From sequence record PV593634.1: a stretch of 64,000 nt of DNA; one strand, 5' to 3'. This document shows positions 4,801 to 49,028 of this stretch, piece by piece; position 1 is the stretch's first letter, and every line of letters starts with the position of its first letter. Both the position numbers and the translations under genes were made by a program. The notes beneath the pieces were generated by a model, which worked only from the letters and a program-made list of their open reading frames with translations, searched no databases and was not told the DNA's origin.

Positions 4801-7800
4801 ACTCACGACGAAGGTCAGTACCTGGGCTGGAAACCACTGTCGCAGAGAGATCATAACTCTGCCAGATCTTAACCGTTTGAGGAACTGGAGTGATGGTTAA
4901 ACCGGCGTATGCTAGAACACTCCTTGTGATACGGTTTTCACCCATTACGTAATCTGTCTGGTCTGGAATATCCCAGCAGAAAATATAACTCCCACCTATT
5001 GTCTTCAGCCCAGTAAGTGTCACGACCATGTCATTACCATCGGCCACAACAGACTTGATTGAGAAACTAGGGTCTAGCGGATCTTGACCCACATAGAACA
5101 TGGACTCAGTTTCGTTGATGACAACGTTCGTAGTTGGTTTACCACGATAAGTCATTTTCCAACGCAGCACTGTTTCTTTCCCTTCGATCAATTCGAATGG
5201 GGAAGGAGCTACTGTACCGTTCAACTGATATACCGTACCAACCGCATCCATAACGAAATAGATAGTCGCCACGAGTTCTACAAACGTTTCACGGAATGGA
5301 GCCTTGATAGTTACCTTGTGGTCAAGCCTTACGTTACTACCTGTCTTAGGACCACTGACAACCTGCCACCAGTTATTGGCTGCATTAGGAGCTTCTGGCA
5401 AATCGATCCATGTTCCGGTAGCCGGTGCCGTAGATACCCACTTAATAGGAGAGCACTGAGCAGTGATATCCGTATTAGCGGGACCAGATACGACTTTCAA
5501 ACCGATAGGTGCAGTTCCACCCACTTCCCACAGAACAACTTTCTTACCACCGATTCCACCCAAACGTGGATAGTCATTAGGGTTACCGATATTAAATTTC
5601 TGGATACCCTCACCAAGGTGTGTGTTACCAGTTACTGGATCAACATACGTGTACTTAAGTTTAACATCTACGATACCGTGCGGGTAATCGAGAGGGATTA
5701 ACATTTTAGCGTTATAGCTTTCAGGTCCGGTGTAAGTTATTTCAACTATATCATCGGGATCCATAACCATGGACAGATTGGGGTCATTCAATGGAATAAG
5801 TTTAGCACCTAAGTAAACCTTAACAGAGAAAGCTGTTGGATCACCACTACCACCGTTAGCTGTGGCGTAAGGCAATACACGCAATGGTTCCATCTTGATG
5901 TCGACATCCATAGTCAAACTTACCCAGTCCAGGAATTCCACACCAGGTTTAGCACCACCAGGACGACGGAAGATAAACTTGATAGGACCTTTATATTCCC
6001 CAACAGGTTCGAACGCCCAGCGAGTACGCTGAGAAGCATCACCAGAACCAATCGGACCGACATTACCAATCTCAATAGCACCGTGCAGATCTGTTTCCAG
6101 ATAGTCAATGATATCCTGACCAGTATAGCTAATCACATCCTTGAACTGGAACTGTGCATCCATAGACGCACCAGAAGCCCCAACCACACCGTTATAAGAC
6201 AGTGAAGGAATTGGAACAGCTGGGTTACCGCCCATCCAAGTACCGGTGAAAGTCTTCTGACTCCATGCAGCGATATTCCAGGTAGTATCTGCTTCACCAG
6301 ACCAAGTCCAGCGACGATAATTACCACTATAACGAATCGGGAATACAACTTGCTTAGCATCAACGTCAGCATTAACAACTTCAAATGCTTTCAGGTTAAT
6401 TGCCACGTATCCATTAGGCTGCGCAGAAGCGTCTACAGCTTGCTGGAACCCAGTGGTCAGGTTAACACCGTCACACATTACAGTAGCGCTAACAACACCC
6501 TTCTGGAACATCTTAACGTTGTACACATTTGGAGTGATAGTAACTTCACTCGTAGTGTATTGCTCAGGAACTTCAACACGACGTGGATAACTGGTTCCAC
6601 CGTAAGAGTATGACATGTTCAGGAAGTCTGACACATCGATAGTCTGACCCGGAGCCAAAGGACCCGTCAGCTTGTATTCGAATGACTTCTCACCCCAAGA
6701 GGTAATGGTCAGAACACCAGCGTTGTTGTTTCCTTCTGTAGCAGCTTCAACCGTAACACGTAAACGACCAGCTGTAATTTCCTCAGCCGCATCCAACGGG
6801 ATACCTGCGAACAGGATTTCCATGTTGTACGTACCGGTTTGGTTATGTTGACCAACCAGCAGGTTATCACGCTGTCCAATCTCAAGACCCAACTCACCCA
6901 GAACCTTAGTCGCAATCACACCTTTCCAGATATGATCTTCAGTTGGCGTAGCGCCAGCTTCAGGAGACCAGAACTCTAAATGAATCTCACCCAGTCCAGG
7001 TTCAACACCCAACAGTGTCAGAACGTAATACTCGCCTTCTACCTTAACGCTCTTAAGAGTTAAAGAATCAGGGAATGTAGAAAGGTTCTGTTTGAATATT
7101 GCTTGACCACCAACAGGTTTATCCTTATACAAAGGACGAACACGCAAGATGGATTCAACGTCAACACCACCATCGATATTAGCAGGACTTACTTGACATT
7201 CGAACTTGACGACTTCTTCGCCGCCACCGCCACTATCGCCACGCTTGAGCACTTTGAACTGTGCATCAAAGTCAAGAGTCTGTTCAGTAGTGGTTGATTC
7301 AACCGCATAGAACAAACGCATGCTTAACGTAACGTCGGTATCAACTTCTTTCTGAGCATCAACGATTTCCCAACCACGAGGGGCTTTGAACTCGATGTAC
7401 TTAGAACCCACCAACACTTCGTAACGCAGGATGGTATTCAGGACTTGATCACCCATCATAACGTTCTGGCTAAACGCACCAGTATCCCACAGTTTACCTG
7501 TAGTCAAATCGTTATTGTTGATAACCGCATCGCCAGTCTTAATCGTTACACCCGTAGACCAGGTCTGACGTTTAGGAGTCGGAGCGCCTACGTCATAAGT
7601 AACAATGAAGTCTTCTGGATAGAGAATAACAGAATTAGCAGTACCACCTTTCTTAGCAGTCACGCGTAAACCAGTCTTAGTGGCACCGGCAATGGTAACG
7701 GCTTTAGAAGCAGTATCGCTTAACTGATAACGCATACCAGGAGCGTTTGGAGCAACAGGGTAAACACCGTACTTGAAGCTCAGTTTGATTTCGCCAGTTT

Positions 7801-10800
7801 CACGCCAGTTCAATTCCAATTCAGAATCGGAACTCTCCAGAATGAATGGTTCATCAGTAGAGGTGGTAATAACGTCAAAGTTAAACGTTACCTTGTCCAT
7901 GTTCTCAACCGGAGGGATTGGAGCATTAGGACGAAGGAATACCAACTTCATCTTATCTGTAGCCTGACCAGAGAAGGTGTATGGCAATTCGCCAGTAGGA
8001 CTTAACTCACCCAGAGAGATGTTGGCAGGGATTACGGAAGTACCCATATCCAACGTAACGTCAGTGATTGGCGCACCAGCATAGAGGTAGTCAAACTTCA
8101 ACACACCACCAGTACCAGCAGGACCTTCCAGACGTAACTCGGAGTCAGTCTCAACAACAAACTTCTTACCGTCATAACGTTCAATGTTGAACTCGGTCTC
8201 AACATCCATGGTGTAGTTGTTACCACCCATTTGGTAAGACAGCATCAACATTACCTGAGTGGTGATAGGACGACTGGTGTTACCGTCGATCACATACCAG
8301 GAATCAGGTTCCACAAAAGAAACGTACGGGTTAGTGCCCAGAGGAACGATAGCGTCGATCGGGACATTCTTACCAGAGGTGTCTCTCAGTGTCAGGGTAA
8401 AGCGACCACGATCCCATACCTTAACGCTATAAACAGGGTTGTTACCGATCATTACATCAGGAATAATGATGGTTGCAGGAATGACGTGTTTCTCAGGCCA
8501 CTCTTTCCCATCAGCGTCAGTATAGAGAACGTTGATTGTTACGTTGTACTTGTACTCGGTTCCTTTCTCTCCACCTTTCTCTAACAGGAAAGTTAAGGAC
8601 TTCTCACCGATAGTTTCCAACTTAACAGGTTCACCAGTACCGCTTGTTGCGGTGATAACCATTTTAGGGTCATCCAGCGGAACCGGAATACCTTCATAGT
8701 TATACTCAAGGGTAAACTGTTGTTCAGATTTCCAATAGCCACGAATGTTGGTCCCGATGTTAACCAGGTTCAGTTCTTTAGGCCATTTGATATCTGTAGG
8801 AATAACTGCATTGATTGTTGAACCAGACTTGTGGACGTAAGCCAGAGTCATGTCGTGAATACCGCCTTTAGTGGTTTCATAACCGACTACCAGACCTTCG
8901 CCTTCAACCTGAGAACCAACACCCAGAATCATGGTTTCTGGAATAGTGGAACGGGTCTTGTCCAGAATAACGTCTTTCGTTGCTTCCACACCTTTATAAG
9001 TAAAGGTAGCAGTGATCTTCCCGTTGGTACGAGAGTCTTGCTCAATGGAGGTCGGATTCCAAACACCTTTGAAAGTAATTTGGTCCCAAGCTTCCAAGTG
9101 GTAAGTAACCGGCTTGATGAACTTCTGATCTTTGGTCTCACCAACAGCCCAACCAATTTCCAACTCTAATGGCAGAGTCAGTTCTTCCTTATCAGCCCAC
9201 ACTACTTCCCAGTTCAGTTTAGAGAACGAGATGTAACGTTGTGATTCGGTAGCACGGATAAAGGTAATAGCAGAACTCCAATCAGTATCTCCAGCGAACA
9301 GTTTAAATGGCAGAGTGCCAGTTTCCCAGATCTTGGTATTAATGATTTCTTCTACATCGCCTTCGATACGCATCGGAGGGAACGTGGTACGAACTGGTAG
9401 GTTCAGACTTACACTGCTAACGTTCAGCGGATCAAGTGGGTCAGCATAGGTATATTTAACAGGGATGTATTCCTGAATATAAGTACCGATAGCTGTCCAC
9501 GTGTTGTTGAATACCAGAATACCGGTATCTTCAACACCTTGTACCTTAACTTTAGTATCGCGAGTCAGGTATTCGGTTTGCAGCTGTGGGTCGGTTAACA
9601 GAACGCGCTCACCAGCGAAGCTCAGATAAACATTAGCCAGCTCAGCAGGTTTAGCAACCTCGATGTTGGTATCACGAGCGTAGTCAGTCAGCAACAGAAC
9701 ACGAGACTGCTTAACGTTCGCGCTGATACTTAAAACACCAGTATCTTCAGGTTTAGGTTCACCTACAACACCAGGACGGATAACGTAGATCTTACCGGTA
9801 GAAACAGTCGGTAACAGTTTGGTATACTTAACGCGAATAACGTTAGTATCTTCAACATAAGAGATTTCGTCAAACGTAATGTGTTCAGGTACGACAGTTT
9901 TATCATCAACCACAATAGCGGTGGACGTAATGTCAACACCTTCCTGGAATACACGGAATTCGAATTCACCGGTTTCGTTGTTTACACCACCAATGGAAAC
10001 ACTGGACGGTACAGTAACAACTACGGTGTTCTCTTTCGGTTCTTCAGGACCTGGTTCTTTCCACGCTTTGATTTCAAAGTTCTGATCGTATTCGAAGTCT
10101 TTCCAAACACCATCAATAGAGAAACGGAACTTAGTCTTAGCAGTGGTCGTGTTATTTGGTTCTGGATCTTTAGGTGCTTCGGTGACCACCCAAGAACCCC
10201 AGCTACCCTGCATAGGCTTGATAATCCCTTTAGGATCGACAAACTCATAACCAGCAATATCACGAGTACGATCTTCGCCGTTCAGTGTAAAGATGAACGG
10301 AATCCAACCTGTGCTATAACGTTCAACCAGATACGGATCAGGATAACGCGGAGTAACACTGTAAACAGAAATACGTTTAACAGTTACACCAATACGGTTC
10401 TGTCTGGTATAACGAACACCCGTAGGAGAAATCCAACGGAAAGTTTGTAACCAGGAATCGCTGATAGGTTCACCAGGAATACCAGAGTCTTTCAGCAAGA
10501 CATAAGTAATGCCCGTTGGGGTAACACCTGTCAGTTCGATCAAACCTTCATCACCAACCACACCTGGGCGAATGTTCAGTTCAGTAGCAGGGATTGGATC
10601 GTCACCGTAGAACGCGCTTACTTCGATCTCACCAGTATCGCCCTTGTAACCAACCACGGAACTGGTTAAGCCACGGATTTCAAACTGAGGACCGGCAGTA
10701 GCAGGGATCAATACAACGTTGACATAAGCAGGAGCCGTCTCAGTTGCACCACCATCGTTATACAGGAACATTTCAGAGTACAACGCGCCTTTCTTCTCTT

Positions 10801-11959
10801 CATCTGGTTTGAAGCTAGTAGAGAGCTTACCAGAGTAGATCATAGTCAGGTCGTCAGTATCCCAACCAGCAAAAGCTAGCGTACCGAATGACGGATCTGC
10901 TTTCAGTTCGTTTGGAGGAACAGCGATCTTAACCTGGGCACCTTTATAGAAGGCCGCAATTTTGAATTCAACATCAGAACCTGATGGCGCTTCCAGAGTA
11001 GGAGGCGTAACCACAAAGGTCAGGTCGAACTCGGCATCCTTTTCGATAACCACTTTGATAATGAAAGTCTTCTTAACAGGACGTCCATTATACATGTGGG
11101 TAACACGAACCAGAATGGTGTCATTAACTTCTTTGTTCTCGGAACCAAAGATAGTTTCACCAACGATAAAGTTACCGTCATCAGAACGCTTAGGAATGGT
11201 GTAACCCGAACCTGTAGTCAACTCAACTGTAGCAGTGTGAGTAATGTCCTGAGTGGTGTTGAACCAATAGGTGTTAGGGATGCTAAAGTCTTTACCACGT
11301 TGTGTGGTGATCGTCTCTGGCAGGTTAGAGGTGATACCAGGAATATTAGCTTCATCCAGAACTAATTCGTAGATGAATACCGGATACTGACCTGAACCGA
11401 AAGAAGCATCGGTGATATCCAGCTTGCCTGATTCCAGTGTATCATAGTCAATGTAAGTCAAAGACTCACGAGACATAGAGTACACGTTAAAGAACAGTTC
11501 ACCAAAAGCCTTCATTGGGCCGTTGATAGTTTTAGCTGATTCTTGGTTTAACAGCACTCCCCAGTTGTCCAACCAAACACACCACAGCAAAGCTGCTTCA
11601 GTTGGGTTAGCTTTAACATATTCCTTTAAGTTTTCTGGATCCTGAATCTCGATGAACGGTACAGCAAAGTCATCTAAGATGTCTTTCATACCAACACGCT
11701 TGATGTCGACGTCAACACGTGCAAAACCGGTTTTGCGCGCAGTAAAGCACACGCGGGTAATACCGTCTGGGAAAGCTACTGGGTTCTCAATAACAAGATC
11801 GCCAGCTACCAGACTTGTATAACGTTCCCGTGCTAATTCGAGTTCGTCGGCAGGGCCTTCGATTTCAAGTTTAGCAATACGTTCTTTAAGGAAACGATCT
11901 ACAGGTGTGTATAACGGGTCGTTAATACACTTTTTGTTAATCTTAATTAAATCTGCCAT
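1814..11959 (-). CDS. Giant 3381-aa tail-fibre-like virion protein with tandem Ig-like beta repeats
   Basis: Long ORF rich in V/T/G/P, with recurring K(I/V)W(D/E)xG..PF and F.I..(W/Y)DG motifs. It lies in a minus-strand structural block. Confidence 0.8.
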   Translation of the reverse strand: MADLIKINKKCINDPLYTPVDRFLKERIAKLEIEGPADELELARERYTSLVAGDLVIENPVAFPDGITRVCFTARKTGFARVDVDIKRVGMKDILDDFAVPFIEIQDPENLKEYVKANPTEAALLWCVWLDNWGVLLNQESAKTINGPMKAFGELFFNVYSMSRESLTYIDYDTLESGKLDITDASFGSGQYPVFIYELVLDEANIPGITSNLPETITTQRGKDFSIPNTYWFNTTQDITHTATVELTTGSGYTIPKRSDDGNFIVGETIFGSENKEVNDTILVRVTHMYNGRPVKKTFIIKVVIEKDAEFDLTFVVTPPTLEAPSGSDVEFKIAAFYKGAQVKIAVPPNELKADPSFGTLAFAGWDTDDLTMIYSGKLSTSFKPDEEKKGALYSEMFLYNDGGATETAPAYVNVVLIPATAGPQFEIRGLTSSVVGYKGDTGEIEVSAFYGDDPIPATELNIRPGVVGDEGLIELTGVTPTGITYVLLKDSGIPGEPISDSWLQTFRWISPTGVRYTRQNRIGVTVKRISVYSVTPRYPDPYLVERYSTGWIPFIFTLNGEDRTRDIAGYEFVDPKGIIKPMQGSWGSWVVTEAPKDPEPNNTTTAKTKFRFSIDGVWKDFEYDQNFEIKAWKEPGPEEPKENTVVVTVPSSVSIGGVNNETGEFEFRVFQEGVDITSTAIVVDDKTVVPEHITFDEISYVEDTNVIRVKYTKLLPTVSTGKIYVIRPGVVGEPKPEDTGVLSISANVKQSRVLLLTDYARDTNIEVAKPAELANVYLSFAGERVLLTDPQLQTEYLTRDTKVKVQGVEDTGILVFNNTWTAIGTYIQEYIPVKYTYADPLDPLNVSSVSLNLPVRTTFPPMRIEGDVEEIINTKIWETGTLPFKLFAGDTDWSSAITFIRATESQRYISFSKLNWEVVWADKEELTLPLELEIGWAVGETKDQKFIKPVTYHLEAWDQITFKGVWNPTSIEQDSRTNGKITATFTYKGVEATKDVILDKTRSTIPETMILGVGSQVEGEGLVVGYETTKGGIHDMTLAYVHKSGSTINAVIPTDIKWPKELNLVNIGTNIRGYWKSEQQFTLEYNYEGIPVPLDDPKMVITATSGTGEPVKLETIGEKSLTFLLEKGGEKGTEYKYNVTINVLYTDADGKEWPEKHVIPATIIIPDVMIGNNPVYSVKVWDRGRFTLTLRDTSGKNVPIDAIVPLGTNPYVSFVEPDSWYVIDGNTSRPITTQVMLMLSYQMGGNNYTMDVETEFNIERYDGKKFVVETDSELRLEGPAGTGGVLKFDYLYAGAPITDVTLDMGTSVIPANISLGELSPTGELPYTFSGQATDKMKLVFLRPNAPIPPVENMDKVTFNFDVITTSTDEPFILESSDSELELNWRETGEIKLSFKYGVYPVAPNAPGMRYQLSDTASKAVTIAGATKTGLRVTAKKGGTANSVILYPEDFIVTYDVGAPTPKRQTWSTGVTIKTGDAVINNNDLTTGKLWDTGAFSQNVMMGDQVLNTILRYEVLVGSKYIEFKAPRGWEIVDAQKEVDTDVTLSMRLFYAVESTTTEQTLDFDAQFKVLKRGDSGGGGEEVVKFECQVSPANIDGGVDVESILRVRPLYKDKPVGGQAIFKQNLSTFPDSLTLKSVKVEGEYYVLTLLGVEPGLGEIHLEFWSPEAGATPTEDHIWKGVIATKVLGELGLEIGQRDNLLVGQHNQTGTYNMEILFAGIPLDAAEEITAGRLRVTVEAATEGNNNAGVLTITSWGEKSFEYKLTGPLAPGQTIDVSDFLNMSYSYGGTSYPRRVEVPEQYTTSEVTITPNVYNVKMFQKGVVSATVMCDGVNLTTGFQQAVDASAQPNGYVAINLKAFEVVNADVDAKQVVFPIRYSGNYRRWTWSGEADTTWNIAAWSQKTFTGTWMGGNPAVPIPSLSYNGVVGASGASMDAQFQFKDVISYTGQDIIDYLETDLHGAIEIGNVGPIGSGDASQRTRWAFEPVGEYKGPIKFIFRRPGGAKPGVEFLDWVSLTMDVDIKMEPLRVLPYATANGGSGDPTAFSVKVYLGAKLIPLNDPNLSMVMDPDDIVEITYTGPESYNAKMLIPLDYPHGIVDVKLKYTYVDPVTGNTHLGEGIQKFNIGNPNDYPRLGGIGGKKVVLWEVGGTAPIGLKVVSGPANTDITAQCSPIKWVSTAPATGTWIDLPEAPNAANNWWQVVSGPKTGSNVRLDHKVTIKAPFRETFVELVATIYFVMDAVGTVYQLNGTVAPSPFELIEGKETVLRWKMTYRGKPTTNVVINETESMFYVGQDPLDPSFSIKSVVADGNDMVVTLTGLKTIGGSYIFCWDIPDQTDYVMGENRITRSVLAYAGLTITPVPQTVKIWQSYDLSATVVSSPGTDLRRELTIIGVSDPRIEVKTKASGQPHRIQIIGAPETEEVVDVVYNVKISDTYGGQTVQVTIPTTFEAWDQVQYKATLRKDMVNKLILFKDGEKDVISVPAVMSGSEYFVLFFDTLVWNKNSPNGSNANNVSIINNFTGGKGLIKHYTGGTGSGSYISVGVQPVKEGLEDGYQLVEYMETPTGGVTRPNGYPQGTLDKNVSRCPITWEMFKPEVVFKDGILPDPIIIPAGAKPYVSIKVPLSLTFGRININLGDTTTGNSGVVTNDVFRLHGAAGTDYIDVESMFENTGESDIETVIPVVVNYWYKGLTGTPMKVYTFNYDYPVIFKGTPGAPDPVVEVTGITEPTTDVWKANTTYPFSVQVDGTNVPLTATNVTAISVDTNEYIQQGTFTEGWKAIKGTEEGITVPVTWKFTFFHNLRSYELTATTNVVINPYDGVELKVTLLNPAEFNKGILSRVSQSTGYSFQVELRGKILDNAGTRPYSLWVTKTNSTMIKGSNLTTTQPYVYTGMLGLVDGLVSEDTDWYVGLTAKETDVNAVEGVDFVKLTIPTYCYDPNRFYPVTWTKELKGTVGQAMNWNYTMRKGITPINMTSSGFGTGLADFGAGNQELAVNGADWWRNPNYLQLKFANVIPVGEKVTPTVFTLGPQSVHVSLHAKFTDINLVQVSTVEHPIATATTEEVTARIKDSGDVPFHVTWKGDDVTSQVSAVRVQSNSYVEMRDGKWYVKFAEIANTTVLPVFELDIRLENVLFTLKLPIKFNILGWNGKEIVATADPLLLGIGEHGLINIKGNYSGAPLPGNVTFDKANSDGAGMVTFGAMNVTEDNQLAIVVTGDTAGRGEVKVQLRSVHDTGNSNPGSDFLDITIPTEVIPANLTPITDFAETGEGSRFVPAVLKQAVLLGEDQLDNNDPGLAIELLNSDVLTIESLGTSTITYNFSEPTSVPIARTAQLKFTYKGRSEYVVDITVTQNPVEARPVITNLTPMTVEYGKSYATPFKVEVAQ

Positions 11960-12030
11960 GAGCAGGGTTCCTTTAGTATGTTATTAGGTATCTAAGTTTA
12001 TTGGTAAAGCAAATGATTCCAAGCCTCAGT

Positions 12031-12066
12031 ACATAATAAGAGAACCCAGGTTTCCCCAGGCTCTCT
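12031..12066 (-). terminator. Hairpin terminator between the 928-aa and 3381-aa genes
   Basis: Minus strand reads GAGAGCCTGGG-GAAA-CCTGGGTTCTC followed by TTATTATGT. Confidence 0.6.
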
Positions 12067-12071
12067 TTTAT

Positions 12072-14858
12072 TTATACATCAATGTGAAGCGGGTAGTAAA
12101 GTGGATCTGGAGATGGGAAACGGAACGCAGCTGCTGCGAAGTATTTCTTCCCTATAGCAAAGTCAGCTTTAACTGTTACTTTGCCAATACCCGTCTTACG
12201 ATCGTAATCGAGATCGATAGTACGAGCTGTTACGTTAACGTTATGTTTCCAGTAATCCTCGATACGGATTTCTTTAGGAATCCCATCGATAGCATCACGG
12301 AACATCCACTCGTAAACCATCATTCCATCTTTGAAGTAATGGTTAAAATAAGTGGCCGCTGCGCTAGGCGCTCTCCAACGCTCACCAGTAGCTACGATAA
12401 CTGTATTGAACGCATCATCAACCAAACACTCAAAACGCTCGTCAAACGAGCTAGGACGATCCAGATCGATGACTTCAACCAGGTAAGTAACCAGACCTGT
12501 AGAAGGATTGTATTTAAACCCTTTCACCTCGGTAGTTGGTTTTAGTGATTTAGGTAAATCGTGGTTACTCTTGATTTGGTGAGTAACTTCGATGTACTCT
12601 CCTTTACTCGCATAACCAACATAATGAGCCGTCACATTTAAAGGGACTGGCTCAAAGTGTTTAATGTCGATCATGAACTCTCTAGCATTCTCTTTGTCGG
12701 AAACAGAGAACACAGGCAACAGGGAGTAGCTGTGACCTTTGTCACCAGGCTCAACGCAAACACTTGTTAATATAGCGGTACCTGATTCATTATCGTACTG
12801 GAAGGACGTATTGCCAATACCACGATCATTAACCATCTTAACGAAGTCTACAGACTCTGGAATACTTCCATCTTTAAGGAGAATAGAAATAGTAGAGACC
12901 AGATGTTTATCTAAATAGACAACGTCTTTGAGCACAAGCTCAGCTGGAAATGTATCGGAACCAAATGTACGTTCGCTAGAGAACTCATATTGCTCACCTC
13001 CCTGGTAACCAGGTAAGGTAAACTTACCAGCCACTTTACGAGTTTCACGTTTCTCAGCAGGACGGCCGTCCATCAGGATAGACAGATACCCATTACGCCA
13101 AACAACCTTAGCAGGCTTGATCGGTTCGCCATTAACAGTCAGGCTGTCAGTTACCAAAGTAAGATTAACCGGAGCGGTGTTGTTAACAAAACGAGGAACC
13201 AGAACCAGCTTCTCAACGGAACCAATCAAACTGTGTTCATGAACTTGGATATCCATTTCGCTTCCCGTTTGTGGGAAAGGAATATAATCGATACCTTTAA
13301 TGTGAACAGGAAGCTTGTGAATGATATCCGTAACAACCGTAACCGAACCCAATACTTCCACTTCAACTGCATCGTCAGTTGGAGGGGTAAGCTCGAAGTG
13401 ACCAGAGACAATGCCCGGTTCTTCATTGGTGTGTTGAGTAACACGAAGACCAGACATATTACGATCAAGCAGAACTTGTAAACCTGAACAGTCTACATCT
13501 TTAACTTTATCATCAGTCAACACCAGGAACTTGTAACCAGAGAACGATCCATCGATACGCCCGATAGATTCATTCCAAACAGTTACTGGTTTAACAACGC
13601 ACTTAACAACGTAAGGAACTGGAAGACCATCAATCACAAAGTGACCACGGATGTCATAACGCATCTCCTTAGTAGTGTCTTCGTGAACATCCCAGGTTAC
13701 ATCTATTTCTGCATCACTGACGTAGTACTTGGCCATCGGTTTAAGATTACCAATCACACCCACAGCAAGAGCTGCGCTGTCCAGTGAGAAGTTCTCTAAC
13801 TGATAGGATGGCTGTTGCAAGGCATTAACTTTCAAACGGGCCGTCAGTTTACCATTCGACAACGTGATTGACTTGACATCCATAGTGAATGAATTCTGGT
13901 AGTCATAAACCACTTCGATATCCATTTCATATTCAGGATAGTCATCAGCCAACGCAATTGCATTAAAGTGATGATGAAGTTTACCACGTTTAATTGTTTC
14001 TACTTTAACAGAGAACTCATAGGTCCCATTATCCTTATTGTAAACAGCGTCAGAAGCATTAACAACACCTGACGGGACAAACGTACCAGATATGAACGGG
14101 GACTTTAGAGAGAAGCTCTTAGGAACTTCTAGGGTATCGGTATAACGAGGTTTAATTACAACGCTAAGACTTTTACCTTTAAGAGTAGTAGAAAGAACAG
14201 AATAAGAAATGGAACGAACGGAAGTAATGTGTTCTTCAAAGTTAATTTCACTGAGAGTCTTAGCCTCCGTTATCTTAACAGCTGCGCGCATATTAATCGA
14301 TGCGATCTTAACACTTGGTTCTGCTTTGAACTTAGCCGTAACAACACCCGTTAATTTATCGTATTCGGAAGAGATTAAACACTCAATACCGATCTTGCGA
14401 TAAGACTCATGCTGAGTGACTTCCGCATGTCTAGAGATCTTACCGTTCTGACGACGTACTTTAACTTTCAGTGTGAGGATGTTGTCTACCAGAGTGCCTT
14501 TAAGAACTTCAGCAACAGGAGCTTCTTCTTCAGCACCTAGCTTAAACTTCTCGTGATAAACTTTAACACCTTCTTCCCCAGCAACAAAGATCTCACCAGA
14601 GATTTCGAATTCTCTTAAATCATCAGGATCGTTAGTCTTCTGGATTTCGTATTCGTTTACAAAGCGACCAGTTTTATTATCATAGTTAGAGTAGACTAAC
14701 TGGAAGATACCTTTCTGGATCAACAGTGGACCGTAATGCACGACGTTAAAGGGATAACCGCCACGAGTCTGTTTAACTGTGTTAACGACTACAAGACGAT
14801 CAGTACCTTTACGATAGGCACTAGTTGTGATGTCCACAGGTGGTTGTGGAGCTGGCAT
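12072..14858 (-). CDS. 928-aa beta-repeat protein, probably virion structural
   Basis: ORF with GGAGG SD. Recurring Y(D/N)xx(T/S/N)G turn motif; co-oriented with the fibre genes. Confidence 0.7.
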   Translation of the reverse strand: MPAPQPPVDITTSAYRKGTDRLVVVNTVKQTRGGYPFNVVHYGPLLIQKGIFQLVYSNYDNKTGRFVNEYEIQKTNDPDDLREFEISGEIFVAGEEGVKVYHEKFKLGAEEEAPVAEVLKGTLVDNILTLKVKVRRQNGKISRHAEVTQHESYRKIGIECLISSEYDKLTGVVTAKFKAEPSVKIASINMRAAVKITEAKTLSEINFEEHITSVRSISYSVLSTTLKGKSLSVVIKPRYTDTLEVPKSFSLKSPFISGTFVPSGVVNASDAVYNKDNGTYEFSVKVETIKRGKLHHHFNAIALADDYPEYEMDIEVVYDYQNSFTMDVKSITLSNGKLTARLKVNALQQPSYQLENFSLDSAALAVGVIGNLKPMAKYYVSDAEIDVTWDVHEDTTKEMRYDIRGHFVIDGLPVPYVVKCVVKPVTVWNESIGRIDGSFSGYKFLVLTDDKVKDVDCSGLQVLLDRNMSGLRVTQHTNEEPGIVSGHFELTPPTDDAVEVEVLGSVTVVTDIIHKLPVHIKGIDYIPFPQTGSEMDIQVHEHSLIGSVEKLVLVPRFVNNTAPVNLTLVTDSLTVNGEPIKPAKVVWRNGYLSILMDGRPAEKRETRKVAGKFTLPGYQGGEQYEFSSERTFGSDTFPAELVLKDVVYLDKHLVSTISILLKDGSIPESVDFVKMVNDRGIGNTSFQYDNESGTAILTSVCVEPGDKGHSYSLLPVFSVSDKENAREFMIDIKHFEPVPLNVTAHYVGYASKGEYIEVTHQIKSNHDLPKSLKPTTEVKGFKYNPSTGLVTYLVEVIDLDRPSSFDERFECLVDDAFNTVIVATGERWRAPSAAATYFNHYFKDGMMVYEWMFRDAIDGIPKEIRIEDYWKHNVNVTARTIDLDYDRKTGIGKVTVKADFAIGKKYFAAAAFRFPSPDPLYYPLHIDV

Positions 14859-14913
14859 ACTACCTCCTAATAAATGTATTCATACTTATTGTACTAAGCA
14901 TAAGATCTTAATA

Positions 14914-14941
14914 AAGAGCCCCGGTTTCCCAGGACTCTCTT
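14914..14941 (-). terminator. Hairpin, near copy of the 12040 element
   Basis: Minus strand reads AGAGTCCTGG-GAAA-CCGGGGCTCT followed by TTATT. Confidence 0.5.
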
Positions 14942-14992
14942 ACTATTAAGGATTGTGTTTGATCGTAACCATCCATGACTATAGGATCCCAC

Positions 14993-15031
14993 AGCAAACA
15001 TAACCCCTCCTAGTCCTTTCGGACTAGGAGG
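14993..15031 (-). terminator. nrdB terminator
   Basis: Perfect 11-bp stem CCTCCTAGTCC/GGACTAGGAGG with a GAAA loop on the minus strand and tail GGTTATGTTTG. Confidence 0.75.
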
Positions 15032-15037
15032 AAGGTA

Positions 15038-18465: not shown

Positions 18466-18743
18466 TGCTAAATCATATTGTTAAACTTAAAGTAGCTTTA
18501 CATTGCCCTGGTATTGCGAACCAACTGCAAGGCACCATCACTGTGGATCCACGCGAAATCAAACGCCTGGAAGAAGTGAACGATAAAGTATTCATCGTTA
18601 TGAATGATGGTGAGCGTTTCTGTTCAGATGAAAATCTGGGCTGTGTTCAGTATGATATTCGCAGGGCTTTTGAAAAGATTGCTGAGTATGAAACTGAACG
18701 CGAGATCGAACGCATGAATCGCGAACTGGATGGGAAGAACTAA
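18465..18743 (+). CDS. Small protein with an FlbD-like domain (start MLNHIV)
   Basis: TAATG overlap. ITVDPREIKRLEEVNDKVFIVMNDGERFCSDE. Confidence 0.7.
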   Translation: MLNHIVKLKVALHCPGIANQLQGTITVDPREIKRLEEVNDKVFIVMNDGERFCSDENLGCVQYDIRRAFEKIAEYETEREIERMNRELDGKN

Positions 18744-19136
18744 ATGAAATACGTATCTGCTTTAATCCGGGTTCTGGATGCTGAAGGTGGTCCAGCAGTT
18801 GTTGACGTAACGAAAGTCGATAGCTTCAAATGCTCAGCACCCAATCGTGTTCGCGTTTACTTGTCTGGTTGTGAAGCACCGCTTCTCATTCAGTCTAATG
18901 TTGATAAGTTCGGGGAACAGGTTAACAACCGCCGTAAGGAAATCTGGGAAGCTCAACACGCTGTTGATATCTTGAAGATCCAACTGCTTGCTGAGATTCG
19001 TGATAACACAAAGACTCAGGAATACAGCGCCGAAGAAATCGTAGCACAAATGAAGCATGCCATGTATGGCGATGGGTCCGTTGTGTTACCAATGGTAACT
19101 GGTGAAGTTAAAACTGATTCACCTAAGGGGTTCTGA
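18744..19136 (+). CDS. Protein with an N-terminal FlbD-like domain (130 aa)
   Basis: Abuts the previous stop. AVVDVTKVDSF...VRVYLSG..LLIQSNVDKFGEQV. Confidence 0.7.
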   Translation: MKYVSALIRVLDAEGGPAVVDVTKVDSFKCSAPNRVRVYLSGCEAPLLIQSNVDKFGEQVNNRRKEIWEAQHAVDILKIQLLAEIRDNTKTQEYSAEEIVAQMKHAMYGDGSVVLPMVTGEVKTDSPKGF

Positions 19137-19534
19137 TGAAACATTCAATTACTTTTGAGACCGAAGATGGTTTCATTGATATCCCGATAAAGGATATTCG
19201 CAATACAACGTTGGAAGGAACTAAGATATTCGTTTCCACCCATCAGAATACCAAGCACCATGTGTTGGGTCGCTTCAAAGACATCGTCGGTGAGATTCGT
19301 GACGCACATACTTATCAACCTGAAGAGTTCTACGTGTGTATCGAATCTCTACGTGAGACATCTTGGCGCGGTGAATTAGGAAAAGAATACACCCGTCGGG
19401 CGATCATCCCAAAAGCGAATCTGCAGAAGGTCGTGGATGACAGTAATGGCGCCATGGTTTATCTCAGAGAAGGAGCTGTGATGTTTACTAAGGAAAGTCC
19501 CGAGGCGTTCCTTAAGTCATTGAGAACTCTGTAA
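19136..19534 (+). CDS. Protein with two FlbD-like domains (132 aa)
   Basis: TGATG overlap. IDIPIKDIRN... and AIIPKANLQKV...MVYLREGAVMFTKESPEAFL. Confidence 0.7.
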   Translation: MKHSITFETEDGFIDIPIKDIRNTTLEGTKIFVSTHQNTKHHVLGRFKDIVGEIRDAHTYQPEEFYVCIESLRETSWRGELGKEYTRRAIIPKANLQKVVDDSNGAMVYLREGAVMFTKESPEAFLKSLRTL

Positions 19535-19696
19535 ATGCAAAAGCAATCTAGGGGTGTGAGTAGAAGGAATCTGCTAATCTTCATGTTTGGTAAGACCTTC
19601 AGCCCCAAGGTTGCCATTGAAGATAAAGTAGTAGATTTGATAATCGGTAAAGAAGCGAGTTTGCTTATCAACTTTAGAAAGAGGATACTGAAATGA
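19535..19696 (+). CDS. 53-aa small ORF below the track cutoff
   Basis: ATG immediately after the upstream TAA; its TGA overlaps the next ATG (ATGA). MQKQSRGVSRRNLLIFMFGKTFSPKVAIEDKVVDLIIGKEASLLINFRKRILK. Confidence 0.6.
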   Translation: MQKQSRGVSRRNLLIFMFGKTFSPKVAIEDKVVDLIIGKEASLLINFRKRILK

Positions 19697-20466
19697 AAAA
19701 CAAAAAGATCGATTGGTTTGTGTACGATAAATACTGGCGTCAATGGTCTCGTGTGGTTTCACGAGGTGGTGGTAACTTTGATCACGAAATCTCTATCCCA
19801 TTGCACCCGATAAATGATGGTCCGAATATAGATAGTGAGAAAGAGTGGGAAGAGATTGCTAAGGTCCAGATCAAACGTTTTGATGTTCGCTATCGCGCAT
19901 CTAGTAAAGATCAGATTTACACTCACGAACTTCCTCAGGAAGTTTATGACCGCCTGGTTATGAAAGTGGGTAAAGCTAAAGCTGATGTGATCATGCATGC
20001 CGACATCTTATCCCTGGTCGATTGGTCTCGTTATGTCGAGTATGGTGACACATACGTTCCATTCGAGATGTGCCGTTATGAACAATCCTGGTATTTCCAT
20101 TCCATCAAACGTGAAGGGGTTGAATCAGTATCGGCTCTGATGGATGCTCAACGCTTCTGTAAGTTGGTACAAATGGAACCCGCTAAGGAATGTATCCTGG
20201 CCGGTGGTTTGTATCACGAACATGAAGGTAAATGCGTAACACTGTTTGCCACTATTGATCCAGTTCGTGAGATCGTAGCTATCGATGTAATGATCAGTAC
20301 GGATCACTTTGATTCTCGTACCCGATTCACTAACAATATACGGGGCGAATGGAACAACTCCATTTATGATCATCTCCTGTTCTCCGATCATGTCTCCGTG
20401 GAGACTCACGAGCAAGCTCTCGAAATGATCAACCGTATCAAAACTAACTTAATCATTTACTCTTAA
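19693..20466 (+). CDS. Hypothetical protein (257 aa)
   Basis: GAGGA SD; long ORF in the operon. Confidence 0.8.
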   Translation: MKNKKIDWFVYDKYWRQWSRVVSRGGGNFDHEISIPLHPINDGPNIDSEKEWEEIAKVQIKRFDVRYRASSKDQIYTHELPQEVYDRLVMKVGKAKADVIMHADILSLVDWSRYVEYGDTYVPFEMCRYEQSWYFHSIKREGVESVSALMDAQRFCKLVQMEPAKECILAGGLYHEHEGKCVTLFATIDPVREIVAIDVMISTDHFDSRTRFTNNIRGEWNNSIYDHLLFSDHVSVETHEQALEMINRIKTNLIIYS

Positions 20467-20483
20467 TTAGAAGGAAGTACAAA

Positions 20484-20939
20484 GTGGAGCTTAAATTTTT
20501 ATTCGGTACTGTTCGTGTCATCAAAAAGAATGACGAAGATACGATAGAAAATGCCACGCTGAAAGACTGCATCCTGATGACTCGTAAAACGGATTTGATT
20601 CAGCATTCTGAAATGGCATCTGCTACATCGTTATTTCCACTAACGGGTGGGTTTATTAAGAGCATCCGTGACCGTAGAAAAATGCATTGGTTTGGTGAAT
20701 CTGTATCTTGCAGAGTTCGGACCGATGAAAGTATGGAACCGTTGTACACTAAGTTGGTTACAACCGAGAACTACTGGAAAGCTGAACTGATTCGTCTGGG
20801 CAGAACTTACACCATCTTCATGGTATGTCCTGTGGATTATGAACCAAGTTGTCAGTTATCAGAACTCAAATGGCAACCATGTTCACACCTTGATCTTAAA
20901 GACATTGTAGAAGCTGAGCAGAAGACCAACGTTTACTAA
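20484..20939 (+). CDS. Hypothetical protein (151 aa)
   Basis: AAGGAA SD and GTG start. Confidence 0.7.
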   Translation: MELKFLFGTVRVIKKNDEDTIENATLKDCILMTRKTDLIQHSEMASATSLFPLTGGFIKSIRDRRKMHWFGESVSCRVRTDESMEPLYTKLVTTENYWKAELIRLGRTYTIFMVCPVDYEPSCQLSELKWQPCSHLDLKDIVEAEQKTNVY

Positions 20940-20944
20940 ACAAA

Positions 20945-20986
20945 CATAATCCCCTACCCCTCCTTTATGGAGTGGGTAGGGTTATG
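20945..20986. terminator. Dispersed palindrome family copy A (bidirectional terminator)
   Basis: CCCCTACCCCTCC-TTTAT-GGAGTGGGTAGGG flanked by CATAA and TTATG, between convergent genes. Confidence 0.75.
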
Positions 20987-21003
20987 AATTACTTTAATTA
21001 TTT

Positions 21004-21609
21004 TTAGACGATTGCTTTAAGGTCTTCAATGAAGTAAAGGTTACCAGTGAACTTATCGATGTTGATAGAAGTGATGGTAAACTCACCAGAAGCTTTGGTT
21101 GTAGGATCCATAGCTGGCGCTGTGGTTACACCAATCTGATCCCAATAGATGTCGTTCATCAAACGCATAACTACATCTGGATTAGCATCAGCTGAGTTCA
21201 GAACAATGGCATGCTTACCAACCATGTTCACATACACTACACCTGGACCTTGTGTTCCGTTCTTAACTGCAAGAGTTAATTCTTCAACCGTACCGTAGGT
21301 GGTTACAACCACACCGAATTCGTTAAAGATAGGAACAATGGTGATCTTCTCTACTTCAATATCAGCACGGAAGAAACCGGTTTTACGAGATAAGAAACAG
21401 CAGAGGACAATTCCACTACCTAAAGTAACTGGAGGTTCGATCATCACATCTTCGTGACGTAAACCATCGTAACGCTGTTTAGCGAGTGTCAATTCGTCGC
21501 TTGGTCCTTCCGCTTCTAGTTTGGCGATACGATCAACCATAAACTTTCGGGCAGATAAGAACACCGGATCATTTATCTTTTTACTGTTAACGCCTGAGAC
21601 TGTGATCAT
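21004..21609 (-). CDS. Stand-alone paralog of the N-terminal domain of the 3381-aa fibre (201 aa)
   Basis: KKINDPVFLSARKFMVDRIAKLEAEGPSDELTLAKQRY..PV..G...RKTGF aligns with KKCINDPLYTPVDRFLKERIAKLEIEGPADELELARERY..PV..DG..RKTGF. Confidence 0.85.
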   Translation of the reverse strand: MITVSGVNSKKINDPVFLSARKFMVDRIAKLEAEGPSDELTLAKQRYDGLRHEDVMIEPPVTLGSGIVLCCFLSRKTGFFRADIEVEKITIVPIFNEFGVVVTTYGTVEELTLAVKNGTQGPGVVYVNMVGKHAIVLNSADANPDVVMRLMNDIYWDQIGVTTAPAMDPTTKASGEFTITSINIDKFTGNLYFIEDLKAIV

Positions 21610-21665
21610 AATGGGCTACCTGTTAATAAAACTATTAGAGTATTTTGACTCGTTCCAAAAGATTC

Positions 21666-21721
21666 AAATGACTTATTACCCGTGTGTATAAAAATACAGA
21701 CAGATATTATTAAAGTGTACA
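21666..21721 (+). promoter_or_regulatory. Tandem putative early promoters (variant at 21666-21690, consensus copy at 21697-21721)
   Basis: AAATGACTTATTACCCGTGTGTATA and CAGACAGATATTATTAAAGTGTACA both carry TATTA-N5-GTGTA. Confidence 0.7.
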
Positions 21722-21751
21722 GTTAATGTGTATCTTAATGAGGAAATAAAG

Positions 21752-22114
21752 ATGGATAGTAAACCTAAACTGATTGTACACGCCATGGCCGAGGAACGTG
21801 TAAAGTATCTGAATCGGCATCTGGTTAATCTAGATACTTGTGTATTAACGATGAAGGAGGTACCTTGGTGGAAACTTTATAAGTTCCTGAAGTACCGTTT
21901 AGCCATCTTGTCGGTAACCATGTGCATACGACCCAAGCTACAAAAACTTATTCTGGATTACACTATCTATACGGCCAATCCTCCAGACTTCACCATCGGG
22001 TATATTAATATGCGATTCACTGAATTTCTGGAAACGCATAAAAAATTCCTAATCAATCTAAATAAACTTTATTTAGTAAAGGAAGATAAGTTTTTAGAAA
22101 AACTGAATAAGTAA
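21752..22114 (+). CDS. Hypothetical protein (start MDSKPKL)
   Basis: GAGGAAA SD before ATG 21752. Confidence 0.7.
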   Translation: MDSKPKLIVHAMAEERVKYLNRHLVNLDTCVLTMKEVPWWKLYKFLKYRLAILSVTMCIRPKLQKLILDYTIYTANPPDFTIGYINMRFTEFLETHKKFLINLNKLYLVKEDKFLEKLNK

Positions 22115-22141
22115 TGTTCTGTTCTAAATTGGAGAAATGAA

Positions 22142-22540
22142 ATGAAAGAAACCGAAGCTCAATATCTAGCAAGACTCGCTTATCATTCAGCTCACGATCT
22201 GTTAGACTGTATCGATGATGCGGTTAAACAAATGATCGAAAGTCGTAATTGGAAAACCTATCTGACCACGTTGGATCTGTTTACTGTATTACATCTGAAA
22301 GCTCGAATGAATACTTTTAAGAAAGCTGTTGGTAACAACTTCGAGTTGTATATCTACAACGGTGATAAATACAACGACCGTGTTCTAGAGTACATCGTTA
22401 ATTTCTATAACGATCTTATTCGTGAATTCCGTAAGGACATTATTAATCTATTCAACTTCTGTCGTAAAGACGTACCGCACCTTACCGGTAACGGTGAGGA
22501 ATCTTTCTTAGCATTAACATACGGTGGTTATATCAGATAA
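22142..22540 (+). CDS. Hypothetical protein (132 aa), possible paralog of the preceding gene
   Basis: GGAGA SD. Shares a Y.IY...D..(I/L).YI...F.E......INL pattern with 21752. Confidence 0.7.
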   Translation: MKETEAQYLARLAYHSAHDLLDCIDDAVKQMIESRNWKTYLTTLDLFTVLHLKARMNTFKKAVGNNFELYIYNGDKYNDRVLEYIVNFYNDLIREFRKDIINLFNFCRKDVPHLTGNGEESFLALTYGGYIR

Positions 22541-22554
22541 CCCAGGAGCCCGCC

Positions 22555-23094
22555 ATGAATACAGTTTTCTGTGCAGACGGACATGTGGATCACTTAGCTT
22601 CTTGCAAAAGAAGGGGATTTGAAACAGTAGAAAAATTCCAAGAGTATTACGCTGATACTTGGTGTTCTAAAGTTGGTAAGAATACTTTAGTGTATTGTGT
22701 CGGGGATATGGCTTTGTACCATTCCGGCTTGGTGTTCATGAAGAAACTTCCTGGGCGCAAGATCCTGGTGATGGGTAACCACGATCCCGAACGTGAAAAC
22801 AATACACGCGATTTAATTGAAGTGTATGATGAACTGTACGGTGTATGGAAGCACAAAGGCTCTCCTTTATATATCGCACACGTTCCTTCCCATCCGTCAC
22901 AACTTCGTGGTCGTTTAATGGTGCACGGGCATTTACATGGAGATGTCATTCAGGATGAACGTTATATCAACGTATCTTGGGAACAACTTCCTGGTCATGC
23001 TCCAGTATCGATCGAAGATATTGTATCGGGTAAATTCAGAACCTGGAGAAAACCTGAACATGGAACAATCCATTTACCGTCTAAGCAAGTATAG
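22555..23094 (+). CDS. Calcineurin-like metallophosphoesterase
   Basis: Motifs ADGH (DxH), VGD, MGNHD, IAH and HGHLH. Confidence 0.9.
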   Translation: MNTVFCADGHVDHLASCKRRGFETVEKFQEYYADTWCSKVGKNTLVYCVGDMALYHSGLVFMKKLPGRKILVMGNHDPERENNTRDLIEVYDELYGVWKHKGSPLYIAHVPSHPSQLRGRLMVHGHLHGDVIQDERYINVSWEQLPGHAPVSIEDIVSGKFRTWRKPEHGTIHLPSKQV

Positions 23095-23287
23095 TAATTA
23101 CGCATTTGTAATTGCTTTCACAGTTTTAGCCATGCTGCTTGGGTTCGATTATTTCAAACCCATCGAAATGACTAAGTTTATTGTTGTTGCCCTATTCCCT
23201 TTCCAGGTGGCGCTGGTAATCTTCGACATCATACTTTACTTTGTACGTCGACAAATAGAAAGGAAACGTCGTGACTCCGTCTCATAA
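23060..23287 (+). CDS. Small two-TM membrane protein (start MEQSIY)
   Basis: GGAGA SD before ATG 23060; two hydrophobic segments. Confidence 0.65.
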   Translation: MEQSIYRLSKYSNYAFVIAFTVLAMLLGFDYFKPIEMTKFIVVALFPFQVALVIFDIILYFVRRQIERKRRDSVS

Positions 23288-23486
23288 CCTTATCGTGTTC
23301 TTTTGCATTATGGTTGTTCTTTATCTTATCTACGTTGGGTCGAAGCTAGTCGACTGTTACATGCCGAGATATCGTAAAGAACAGGTCGTCAAAATTATTA
23401 AGGTCAACGGTACCATTATTCTGACCGCTTCTATCTTTACCCTCGTTATCAATGGCTGTGTTGCAATCTATAAGGTATTCTCATGA
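23271..23486 (+). CDS. Small two-TM membrane protein (71 aa)
   Basis: AAGGAA SD, GTG start, two hydrophobic segments, ATGA overlap with thyA. Confidence 0.65.
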   Translation: MTPSHNLIVFFCIMVVLYLIYVGSKLVDCYMPRYRKEQVVKIIKVNGTIILTASIFTLVINGCVAIYKVFS

Positions 23487-24673
23487 AAAAGTTAAATAAG
23501 TATGAACACTGGTATATGGAACAGATGAATAACATCATCGAGAACGGTCAACGTCGTGGCGACCGTACCGGTACTGGTGTTATCTCTCTACCTGATCTGG
23601 AGTATCGTCATGACCTGCGTGAATCTTACCCAGTTCTGTGGTCTCGCTTCTTTAACCTTCATATGCCTATCATCGAGATTTTGTGGATGATGTCGGGTAG
23701 CTCCAATATCCTGGAACTGAAAGAGAAAGGTTGTCCGTTCTGGAATGGCTTTGCGGTTAAAGGTGACAAGATTGTAGCGACTCAGTTGTCTTTAACTGAA
23801 CGTCTTAAATTGTTAGCCGCTAAACAGGGTGTTCCTTACGGTAAGGTTCTCCAGGTATTCGGTAGTGAGAAACCTGAAGATATTAAACTGGAACTGGATC
23901 TGAAAGAGATCCCCGATACCCAAGATATGCTGGTTGCTAAAGACGGTGACCTAGGTCCAGTATACGGTCACCAGTGGCGTTATTGGCCAAACCCTGATGG
24001 ATCTACCTTCGACCAGTTAACGTACGCTCTGGAAGCTTTACGTAGCGATCCTAACAACCGTCGCATCGTAGTCAACTGTTGGAACCCAAGTTACCTGCCG
24101 GATCCTAAGAAATCCCCAGCAGAGAACGCTGCTAACGGTAAGATGGCTTTGACTCCGTGCCACTTCAGCTTTGGTTTCTATACCTGGGAAATTCCTTTCC
24201 ATGAACGTGCTGAAATGTTGAAAGGTCTGTGTGCTCCAGAAGAATGGCGTAGCATCTATCCCATCACAAGTGGATCTGAAGCAATTGCTAAGATCGAAGC
24301 ACTGTGTGGTAAGTACGATATCCCTCGCTACTTCCTGGACCTGAAATACGTGATGCGTTCAAACGACTGGATCCTAGGTCAGCCAGCCAATATGAACATG
24401 TACTCTGCCATGTTAATGGTGTTTGCGAAAGAACTGAACATGGTTCCTCGCTACGTCAAATACACTGGCTGGGATTGTCATGTTTACGCCAACCATCTGG
24501 AAGGTGCCGAAGAACTAAACCGTCGTTGGGCTACTGGTGAACATAAGTACTCTAATGTGCATGTTAACCTGGATACCGAAGCACTTGGTCTGTTTAACTA
24601 CAGACATGATGACTTCCACGTTCCTGAAGCTTATAAGCCGCTGGACAAAATCAAATTCCCTATCGCTATCTAA
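23483..24673 (+). CDS. thyA: Thymidylate synthase with two large insertions
   Basis: DRTGTG, YGHQWR, RRIVVNCWNP, LTPCH, RSND..LG.P.N and DCHVYANH motifs. Confidence 0.95.
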   Translation: MKKLNKYEHWYMEQMNNIIENGQRRGDRTGTGVISLPDLEYRHDLRESYPVLWSRFFNLHMPIIEILWMMSGSSNILELKEKGCPFWNGFAVKGDKIVATQLSLTERLKLLAAKQGVPYGKVLQVFGSEKPEDIKLELDLKEIPDTQDMLVAKDGDLGPVYGHQWRYWPNPDGSTFDQLTYALEALRSDPNNRRIVVNCWNPSYLPDPKKSPAENAANGKMALTPCHFSFGFYTWEIPFHERAEMLKGLCAPEEWRSIYPITSGSEAIAKIEALCGKYDIPRYFLDLKYVMRSNDWILGQPANMNMYSAMLMVFAKELNMVPRYVKYTGWDCHVYANHLEGAEELNRRWATGEHKYSNVHVNLDTEALGLFNYRHDDFHVPEAYKPLDKIKFPIAI

Positions 24674-28837: not shown

Positions 28838-28859
28838 ACAGATATTATTAAAGTGTTAA
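28835..28859 (+). promoter_or_regulatory. Putative early promoter copy, upstream of clpP-groEL
   Basis: TAAACAGATATTATTAAAGTGTTAA. Confidence 0.7.
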
Positions 28860-33987: not shown

Positions 33988-34012
33988 TGGATAGATATTA
34001 TCTATGTGTATG
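33988..34012 (+). promoter_or_regulatory. Putative early promoter copy
   Basis: TGGATAGATATTATCTATGTGTATG. Confidence 0.7.
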
Positions 34013-35382: not shown

Positions 35383-36021
35383 TTACGGGTTTGTGGCTTT
35401 GAGTCTTTCTTCGAGTTCATTGATGTACGCGTAGAGTTGTTGGTTCTCGGTAACGAGTTTCTCATTGCGTGCTAAATCTGAAGGATTCTCAGTGATGGCC
35501 TGCTGTCTTGTTTTCTCCCAAGCATCTGATTGCTCTTTAGAGATATAAGCACGAGTAGGTACGACACCGATAGTCGTTCTTGGATTCTGAATCCCGATAG
35601 AAGTTTTAATGTAGTTATTGATATGTTCAACAGCCGCATTAATACGATCTTTAAAACCTGGAGGACAAGCACCTAAGTCAGCAATGATACAGATGTGTTC
35701 TAAGATAACACCATCAACCAACGGGAATGACTTCATGTATGTAGAAAGAACATACACGGGTTTGTTTCCACGACTGGTTAATGCAATCACAACAGCTTCG
35801 TCAGTGATGGCCTGATCGATATATGTTTGTGCTTGATCTTGAGCAATGCCAACTGGTTCTAAAACCAGCTTCCAAATATCTACCTTCTCTGCCAGTAACA
35901 TTTGTACTGTATCGACAGACTCAACAGTATAGAAGACCGCAGGATCGACTATAGTGTTAAAAGGACTATTCGCTTCAAACGAACCTTCAGCCCAAACCGC
36001 TGGTATCAGGTTTTGACTCAT
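35383..36021 (-). CDS. Conserved phiKZ-like protein, probably virion structural (212 aa)
   Basis: Coupled to the upstream 443-aa gene by an ATGA overlap; C-terminal coiled coil. Recalled family similarity only. Confidence 0.65.
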   Translation of the reverse strand: MSQNLIPAVWAEGSFEANSPFNTIVDPAVFYTVESVDTVQMLLAEKVDIWKLVLEPVGIAQDQAQTYIDQAITDEAVVIALTSRGNKPVYVLSTYMKSFPLVDGVILEHICIIADLGACPPGFKDRINAAVEHINNYIKTSIGIQNPRTTIGVVPTRAYISKEQSDAWEKTRQQAITENPSDLARNEKLVTENQQLYAYINELEERLKATNP

Positions 36022-48953: not shown

Positions 48954-48978
48954 TAGACAGATATTATCAAAGTAGATA
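48954..48978 (+). promoter_or_regulatory. Putative early promoter copy (variant)
   Basis: TAGACAGATATTATCAAAGTAGATA. Confidence 0.6.
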
Positions 48979-49028
48979 CGGTGGAAATCTAATTTAATAA
49001 TATCCGTTATTAAATCAGGACTGAGGTA

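Follow-up and report, generated by a model that had tools for sequence, protein, structure and literature searches.

A conserved stand-alone form of the head module of a giant Ig-like chain protein in Shewanella jumbo phage SXP01 and its OBP-like relatives

Here, we present an analysis of a small gene in the genome of SXP01, an OBP-like Shewanella jumbo phage and relative of phiKZ (record PV593634.1; 269,939 bp), whose closest relatives are the phiKZ-like jumbo phages Klebsiella phage N1M2 and Pseudomonas phage OBP. The analysis covered a window of 64,000 nucleotides, in which coordinates correspond to those of the record minus 186,000; window positions 19000 to 24000 match the record at 100% identity. 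The gene (P0001; 21004 to 21609, minus strand) starts with an ATG and encodes a stand-alone, head-only protein of 201 aa (XTB82787.1), which was characterized using BLASTP, profile searches, alignments, and structural models. On the same strand, an ORF at 1814 to 11959 encodes a giant protein of 3,381 aa; based on homology, profile, alignment, and model, its residues 1 to 205 (11345 to 11959) form an N-terminal head module, while the rest of the protein (1814 to 11344), as delineated from the ORF and the model, has its first Ig-like domain modelled at residues 208 to 309. Both proteins are labelled hypothetical protein in the SXP01 record, and the records of the relatives likewise label the short form and the giants hypothetical. 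Between 16534 and 31585, the 201-aa gene is the only called gene that is not on the plus strand, and the plus-strand block around it bears early-promoter-like motifs, in agreement with the first-pass annotation, which had described the gene as lying alone on the minus strand in an early region. The SXP01 record has 193 annotated features versus 261 to 313 in the relatives, and conserved small ORFs near the 201-aa gene (e.g., 21728 to 22114 and 22142 to 22540) are without annotation. Among public sequencing runs, sequence near-identical to that of the phage at window positions 18600 to 24500 is present in invertebrate, gut, and amphibian metagenomes as well as in small runs labelled as single organisms; one public run has a diverged 184-nt replacement at 19344 to 19529. 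A 191-nt contig identical to 21093 to 21283 is present in one wastewater metatranscriptome, which documents presence in an RNA library only, with carried-over DNA as a possible source.

Using BLASTP, we found that the 201-aa protein and the giant share 37% identity over residues 7 to 142 of both proteins (E = 5e-28), while the remaining BLASTP segments between them are noise. This plain pairwise alignment spans ∼70% of the 201-aa protein, and similarity in the remaining part emerges only from profiles or models: The N-terminus of the giant is matched by positions 6 to 194 of a 201-position profile built from 43 stand-alone orthologues (E = 1.7e-41), and when stand-alone, mid-length, and giant forms are aligned together, the alignment is continuous from the first to the last position, with P15, R46, Y47, I57, E58, C71, R75, D83, and G175 being invariant in this mixed alignment. 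AlphaFold2 predicted the structures of the 201-aa protein and of giant residues 1 to 340 with pLDDT values of 89.6 and 86.3, respectively, and the two models contain 14 helices and strands in identical order, i.e., two helices, a beta-hairpin region, and an alpha/beta sub-domain closed by a short helix. The 201-aa protein stops at this last short helix of the module, while the giant enters an Ig-like domain from approximately residue 208; the first Ig-like domain of the giant resembles the S-layer protein SbsC (Z = 10.7; rmsd of 2.0 Å over 86 residues). In Foldseek comparisons, the 201-aa model matches the predicted N-termini of the giants of the relatives and of a 711-aa OBP paralogue with TM values of 0.82 to 0.86, and among predicted viral structures good matches (TM of 0.75 to 0.86) are only to N-termini in the same phage group. 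Based on these alignments and models, we consider the 201-aa protein to be homologous end to end with residues 1 to ∼205 of the giant; the similarity over the whole module, the common predicted fold, and the placement of the module at the extreme N-terminus all assign it to the head-module family. The first-pass annotation had proposed an alignment with the first ∼200 aa of the giant and the lack of a repeat stalk, and had suggested pairwise alignment and structure prediction as checks. Both bear the proposal out, with the reservation that the pairwise part covers the ∼70% given above.

The module has no match among known families. Searches of Pfam-A (E up to 1) and PHROGs (E up to 0.1) identified no family for the 201-aa protein or for giant residues 1 to 220; Pfam likewise had no match for ten mid-length family members, and Pfam and PHROGs had none for the giant and its two large neighbours. 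In the PDB, no fold match to the module was found (best Foldseek E = 0.096; best VIA-align Z = 3.8), PDB sequences gave no profile match (best E = 0.059), and the ESM Atlas gave no usable match. As judged from these sequence searches, the head module of the OBP-type giant chain proteins is an uncatalogued family, which we define here. Two SXP01 proteins considered as possible family members, i.e., the 928-aa neighbour (12072 to 14858) as a module carrier and the 212-aa virion protein at 35383 to 36021 as a relative, are unrelated to the module. In BFVD, the 220-aa OBP protein G9I9I5 and proteins of 200 to 290 aa from the Erwinia phages Joad and RisingSun have a weaker fold likeness to the module (TM of 0.36 to 0.66), with a resemblance that is undetectable by sequence. 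Going by the models, small head-like proteins may form a wider family that includes these OBP, Joad, and RisingSun members.

Using tblastn, we found the 201-aa protein in 33 phage records, representing about 20 distinct phages with Shewanella, Serratia, Klebsiella, Pantoea, Erwinia, Edwardsiella, Kosakonia, Pseudomonas, and Aeromonas as hosts. With the head of the giant as the query, the identical set of 33 records was retrieved, each with at least two copies of the module, while the module was absent from phiKZ. An exhaustive profile search across 1.84 billion representative proteins identified only 78 clusters with the module. In 76 clusters, residue 1 is the start of the module; about 25 of the 78 clusters have a length of ∼200 aa, and the others range from 355 to 5,283 aa. 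We examined ten genomes, covering at least six genera, more closely. All ten have an orthologue of ∼200 aa that is lone and on the opposite strand, and the orthologues in OBP, N1M2, Yubaba, Survivor, AH04, pEt-SU, Kc263, PS1, and LAh10 occupy the same slot as in SXP01, which in most of the ten adjoins genes for a Ser/Thr phosphatase and a thymidylate synthase. Each of the ten genomes has exactly one short form together with one to four long module-headed proteins of 711 to 5,129 aa.

For eight phages, each with a short form and a giant, we compared the conservation of the two parts of the module. Residues 1 to 87 of the 201-aa protein, comprising a helical hairpin and a beta-hairpin sub-domain, are common to the giant: Identity is 74% among short forms, 70% among giants, and still 48% between short forms and giants, and 24 positions, including an RKTGF-R-D block, are invariant in both classes. 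By contrast, residues 88 to 201, which form the alpha/beta sub-domain, are specific to the stand-alone class, with corresponding identities of 51%, 64%, and 22% and with class-specific invariant switches (I154-Y155-W156 in the short form versus L-F-F in the giants; P versus T at position 144). Because residues 1 to 87 are conserved across the classes and residues 88 to 201 are not, we conclude from the alignments that the first sub-domain would bear a function common to all forms, while the second appears specialized. This class-specific second sub-domain could provide the 201-aa protein with a different partner.

An alternative that builds on this pattern is that the 201-aa protein is an adaptor for an anchor-less partner, docking on the virion via its first sub-domain and holding a protein without a head module via the second. 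Podophages of the SP6/K1-5/K1E type provide a precedent; they have a separate tail adaptor protein, which is related to the N-terminal domain of the T7 tail fibre gp17 and stands in for the anchor that their tailspikes lack, so that the virion-attachment domain of a fibre is its own protein, as would be the case here. The divergence of residues 88 to 201 between the classes, the Y155-W156 and P144 switches in particular, and the presence of several large neighbours without the module, such as the 928-aa protein, speak for this alternative. However, the 201-aa protein stops exactly where the domain does, which leaves no additional segment for holding a partner. Moreover, in contrast to the SP6/K1-5/K1E case, the long protein in OBP-like phages keeps its own copy of the module and short and long forms coexist, and Pfam, PHROGs, and the PDB give the module no sequence or fold match. 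Altogether, we regard an adaptor function as unlikely.

The 201-aa gene appears to form a transcription unit of its own. Directly after its stop codon, at the convergent junction, a G+C-rich hairpin with a T-rich tail (20952 to 20981) is a probable two-way terminator; a hairpin is present 3′ of the short gene in 10 of 10 orthologous loci, differing in sequence and having the same form. A G+C-rich hairpin ending in TTATTATG or similar also precedes both large minus-strand genes (11960 to 12071 and 14859 to 15037), which suggests that each of them is a separate transcription unit after a terminator. The 118-nt spacer upstream of the 201-aa gene contains the AT-rich motif AGATATTATTAAAGT (21702 to 21716, plus strand), which is early-promoter-like, faces away from the 201-aa gene, and points to the plus-strand neighbour starting at 21728/21752. 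It is one of five matches in the window, versus 0.43 expected, to the recurrent motif AGATATTATYAAAGT (21702 to 21716, 28840 to 28854, 33993 to 34007, and 48959 to 48973 on the plus strand; 48991 to 49005 on the minus strand), which is found before plus-strand genes, agrees with the description of early promoters for such phages (PMC7598289), and is probably the early promoter consensus of SXP01. A scan for sigma-70-type promoters around the 201-aa gene identified none, as expected since a phage of the SXP01 type uses its own RNA polymerases.

On the minus strand, the motif GAATCTTTTG (21656 to 21665) starts 56 nt before the ATG of the 201-aa gene, and the motif GAATCATTTG (12010 to 12019, minus strand) starts 60 nt before the ATG of the giant gene, just downstream of a terminator hairpin. 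These are the only two copies of the pattern GAATCNTTTG in the 64-kb window, and GRATCNTTTG has three copies in the whole 270-kb SXP01 genome. The motif is found 49 to 56 nt upstream of eight of the ten short genes (31 nt in LAh10; as a variant in PS1) and 59 to 64 nt upstream of six of the eight giant genes, the other two having a close variant, while three mid-length paralogues have the form GGATYCTATG 44 to 53 nt upstream. It is kept at these places across genera despite diverged flanking intergenic sequence. The relaxed form GRWTYNTWTG shows no enrichment (8 copies in the window versus 11 expected), arguing against a general signal for late genes. Its position and conservation point to a regulatory role, making it a candidate late promoter or regulatory element. 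In phiKZ, the sole conserved feature of late promoters is a TATG at the start site (PMC7598289); because the motif ends in TTTG or TATG, we infer by analogy that the short gene is made late together with the giant via the shared motif.

This arrangement bears on a second alternative, in which the 201-aa protein is a non-virion assembly factor or regulator, i.e., a chaperone or timer that transiently caps the head of the giant or its docking site and is not kept in the particle. The gene is located apart from the structural cluster, as a single-gene unit within a non-structural block, and its orthologues have never been annotated as structural. However, the label hypothetical is no proof of absence from the virion given that the giants are labelled alike. 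Moreover, the early-type promoter is oriented away from the 201-aa gene and the upstream motif is shared with the giant gene, which together count against this alternative. We consider an assembly factor of this kind improbable.

To analyze the age of the short form, we generated a maximum-likelihood tree of 24 modules, including ten stand-alone copies and eight giant heads. The stand-alone copies form one clade (support of 97/99; present in 97% of the bootstrap trees), which tracks the phages and is apart from all long forms except two that are weakly placed and long-branched; the giant heads form a separate group (support of 81/95), and no long form is nested within the stand-alone clade. 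The separation of the two clades argues that the duplication is older than the split of these genera. The dN/dS values are 0.05 to 0.22 for the short gene and 0.035 to 0.15 for the head of the giant, and 49 positions are invariant across the 43 stand-alone orthologues. The short gene is under purifying selection. In this respect, the stand-alone copy of the head module that the first-pass annotation had described is genuine and under selection. The first-pass annotation had also proposed that this copy might be a socket onto which new fibres are recombined, i.e., a landing pad or reservoir from which new long fibres would arise by gene fusion. The additional module-bearing long proteins in OBP, Yubaba, Survivor, and LAh10, which have three to five copies of the module each, and the weakly supported placement (54/92) of a 1,042-aa Yubaba protein towards the stand-alone copies in the tree fit this idea. 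However, the stand-alone copies are a single, old, phage-tracking clade without nested long forms, and the Yubaba protein is equidistant from both classes in residues 1 to 87 (identity of 0.50 versus 0.47), so that this part of the earlier interpretation is unsupported and highly improbable. Finally, the small size and the hypothetical label are all that would suggest a decaying fragment or chance ORF without function, while length, position, and sequence are kept in ten genomes from at least six genera, selection is purifying, and the fold model is confident; the conservation data rule out a non-functional remnant, and we assign this reading almost no weight and take the 201-aa gene, from its sequence, to be functional and old.

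The co-occurrence of the short form with the long forms and the motif shared with the giant gene are consistent with a role at one attachment or assembly point, for instance as a plug, a competitor, or a co-subunit. We tentatively favor, with a confidence somewhat short of even, that the 201-aa protein is a stalk-less partner made with the giant that joins or occupies the attachment complex of the giant via residues 1 to 87 and sets the number of giant chains mounted. According to this model, the 201-aa protein, which is paralogous to the ∼205-residue head module of the OBP-like giant Ig-like chain protein and lacks the stalk, would be expressed along with the giant from a one-gene unit that has the shared rare element and a hairpin terminator. 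Residues 1 to 87 would bring it into the attachment complex of the giant's head, where it would either contribute a stalk-less subunit to an oligomeric anchor of mixed composition or fill equivalent docking sites itself; in both cases, the 201-aa protein would set the number of giant chains per site. The model implies that the protein would be made late, would be present in the virion, would bind to the head of the giant or to a common partner, and would affect fibre number. The papers describing SXP01, N1M2, ZPAH34, and Kc263 report no proteomics; micrographs of N1M2 revealed no tail fibres, and tail fibres are visible in micrographs of Kc263.

phiKZ offers a parallel for a mixed anchor. Each phiKZ fibre anchor is made up of six gp131-like N-domains from several paralogues, beneath the baseplate protein gp130 (PMC13250141). 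As in SXP01, several long paralogues begin with one and the same N-terminal module (in phiKZ, the virion proteins gp131, gp133, gp134, and gp135), and the gp131 family includes a short paralogue, gp132. Unlike in SXP01, where the long partners are giant Ig-like chains, the long phiKZ proteins are beta-propeller fibres, and there is no detectable sequence relationship between their N-domains and the SXP01 head module. A comparison with the N-termini of gp131, gp133, gp134, and gp135 led us to reject the module as a gp131-type fibre anchor (hhalign probability of 0.06%; E = 0.73). As a positive control, the same gp131-N profile matched two other SXP01 proteins of 254 aa and 1,229 aa at 98.3% and 97.8%, respectively. 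The 254-aa protein (record positions 129140 to 129904, plus strand) is a stand-alone, anchor-only member of the gp131-N family, and the product of the next gene, the 1,229-aa protein (record positions 129966 to 133655, plus strand), starts with a gp131-N-like domain. Together with the pair of the 201-aa protein and the giant, this pair argues that SXP01 has two unrelated putative anchor families, both of which combine a head-only member with long ones.

The third genomic copy of GRATCNTTTG is located 35 to 44 nt upstream of an unannotated ORF of 410 aa (record positions 127878 to 129110, minus strand), the product of which is a homologue of phiKZ gp130 (BLASTP E = 4e-14; both match phrog_3337 end to end). 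This ORF is located upstream of the spanin genes. The third copy overlaps codons 2 to 5 of the divergent gene for the 254-aa protein, making coding constraint a rival reason for conservation of the motif at this site. We speculate that head-only paralogues might reflect a general rule for jumbo phage appendages, in which anchors would mix long and head-only subunits and the dosage of the head-only gene would determine the number of giant chains per site, with the OBP-like set being co-regulated by a private promoter element common to the genes for the head-only protein, the giant, and perhaps a gp130-type baseplate platform; as a generalization, we consider this doubtful.

OBP-like jumbo phages devote 4% to 7% of their genome to giant bead-string proteins. 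Here, we describe a group of stand-alone orthologues of the head module of these proteins, their conserved slot, the shared upstream motif, and the two-part conservation pattern. The shared motif would be among the few sequence-defined non-early elements proposed for phages with their own multisubunit RNA polymerases. The small, soluble-sized head-only protein is a practical handle that can be expressed, tagged, crystallized, and used as bait for the attachment partner of the giants. If the 201-aa protein shares the attachment complex of the giant, it would reveal how a phage controls the number of very large appendages that it carries.
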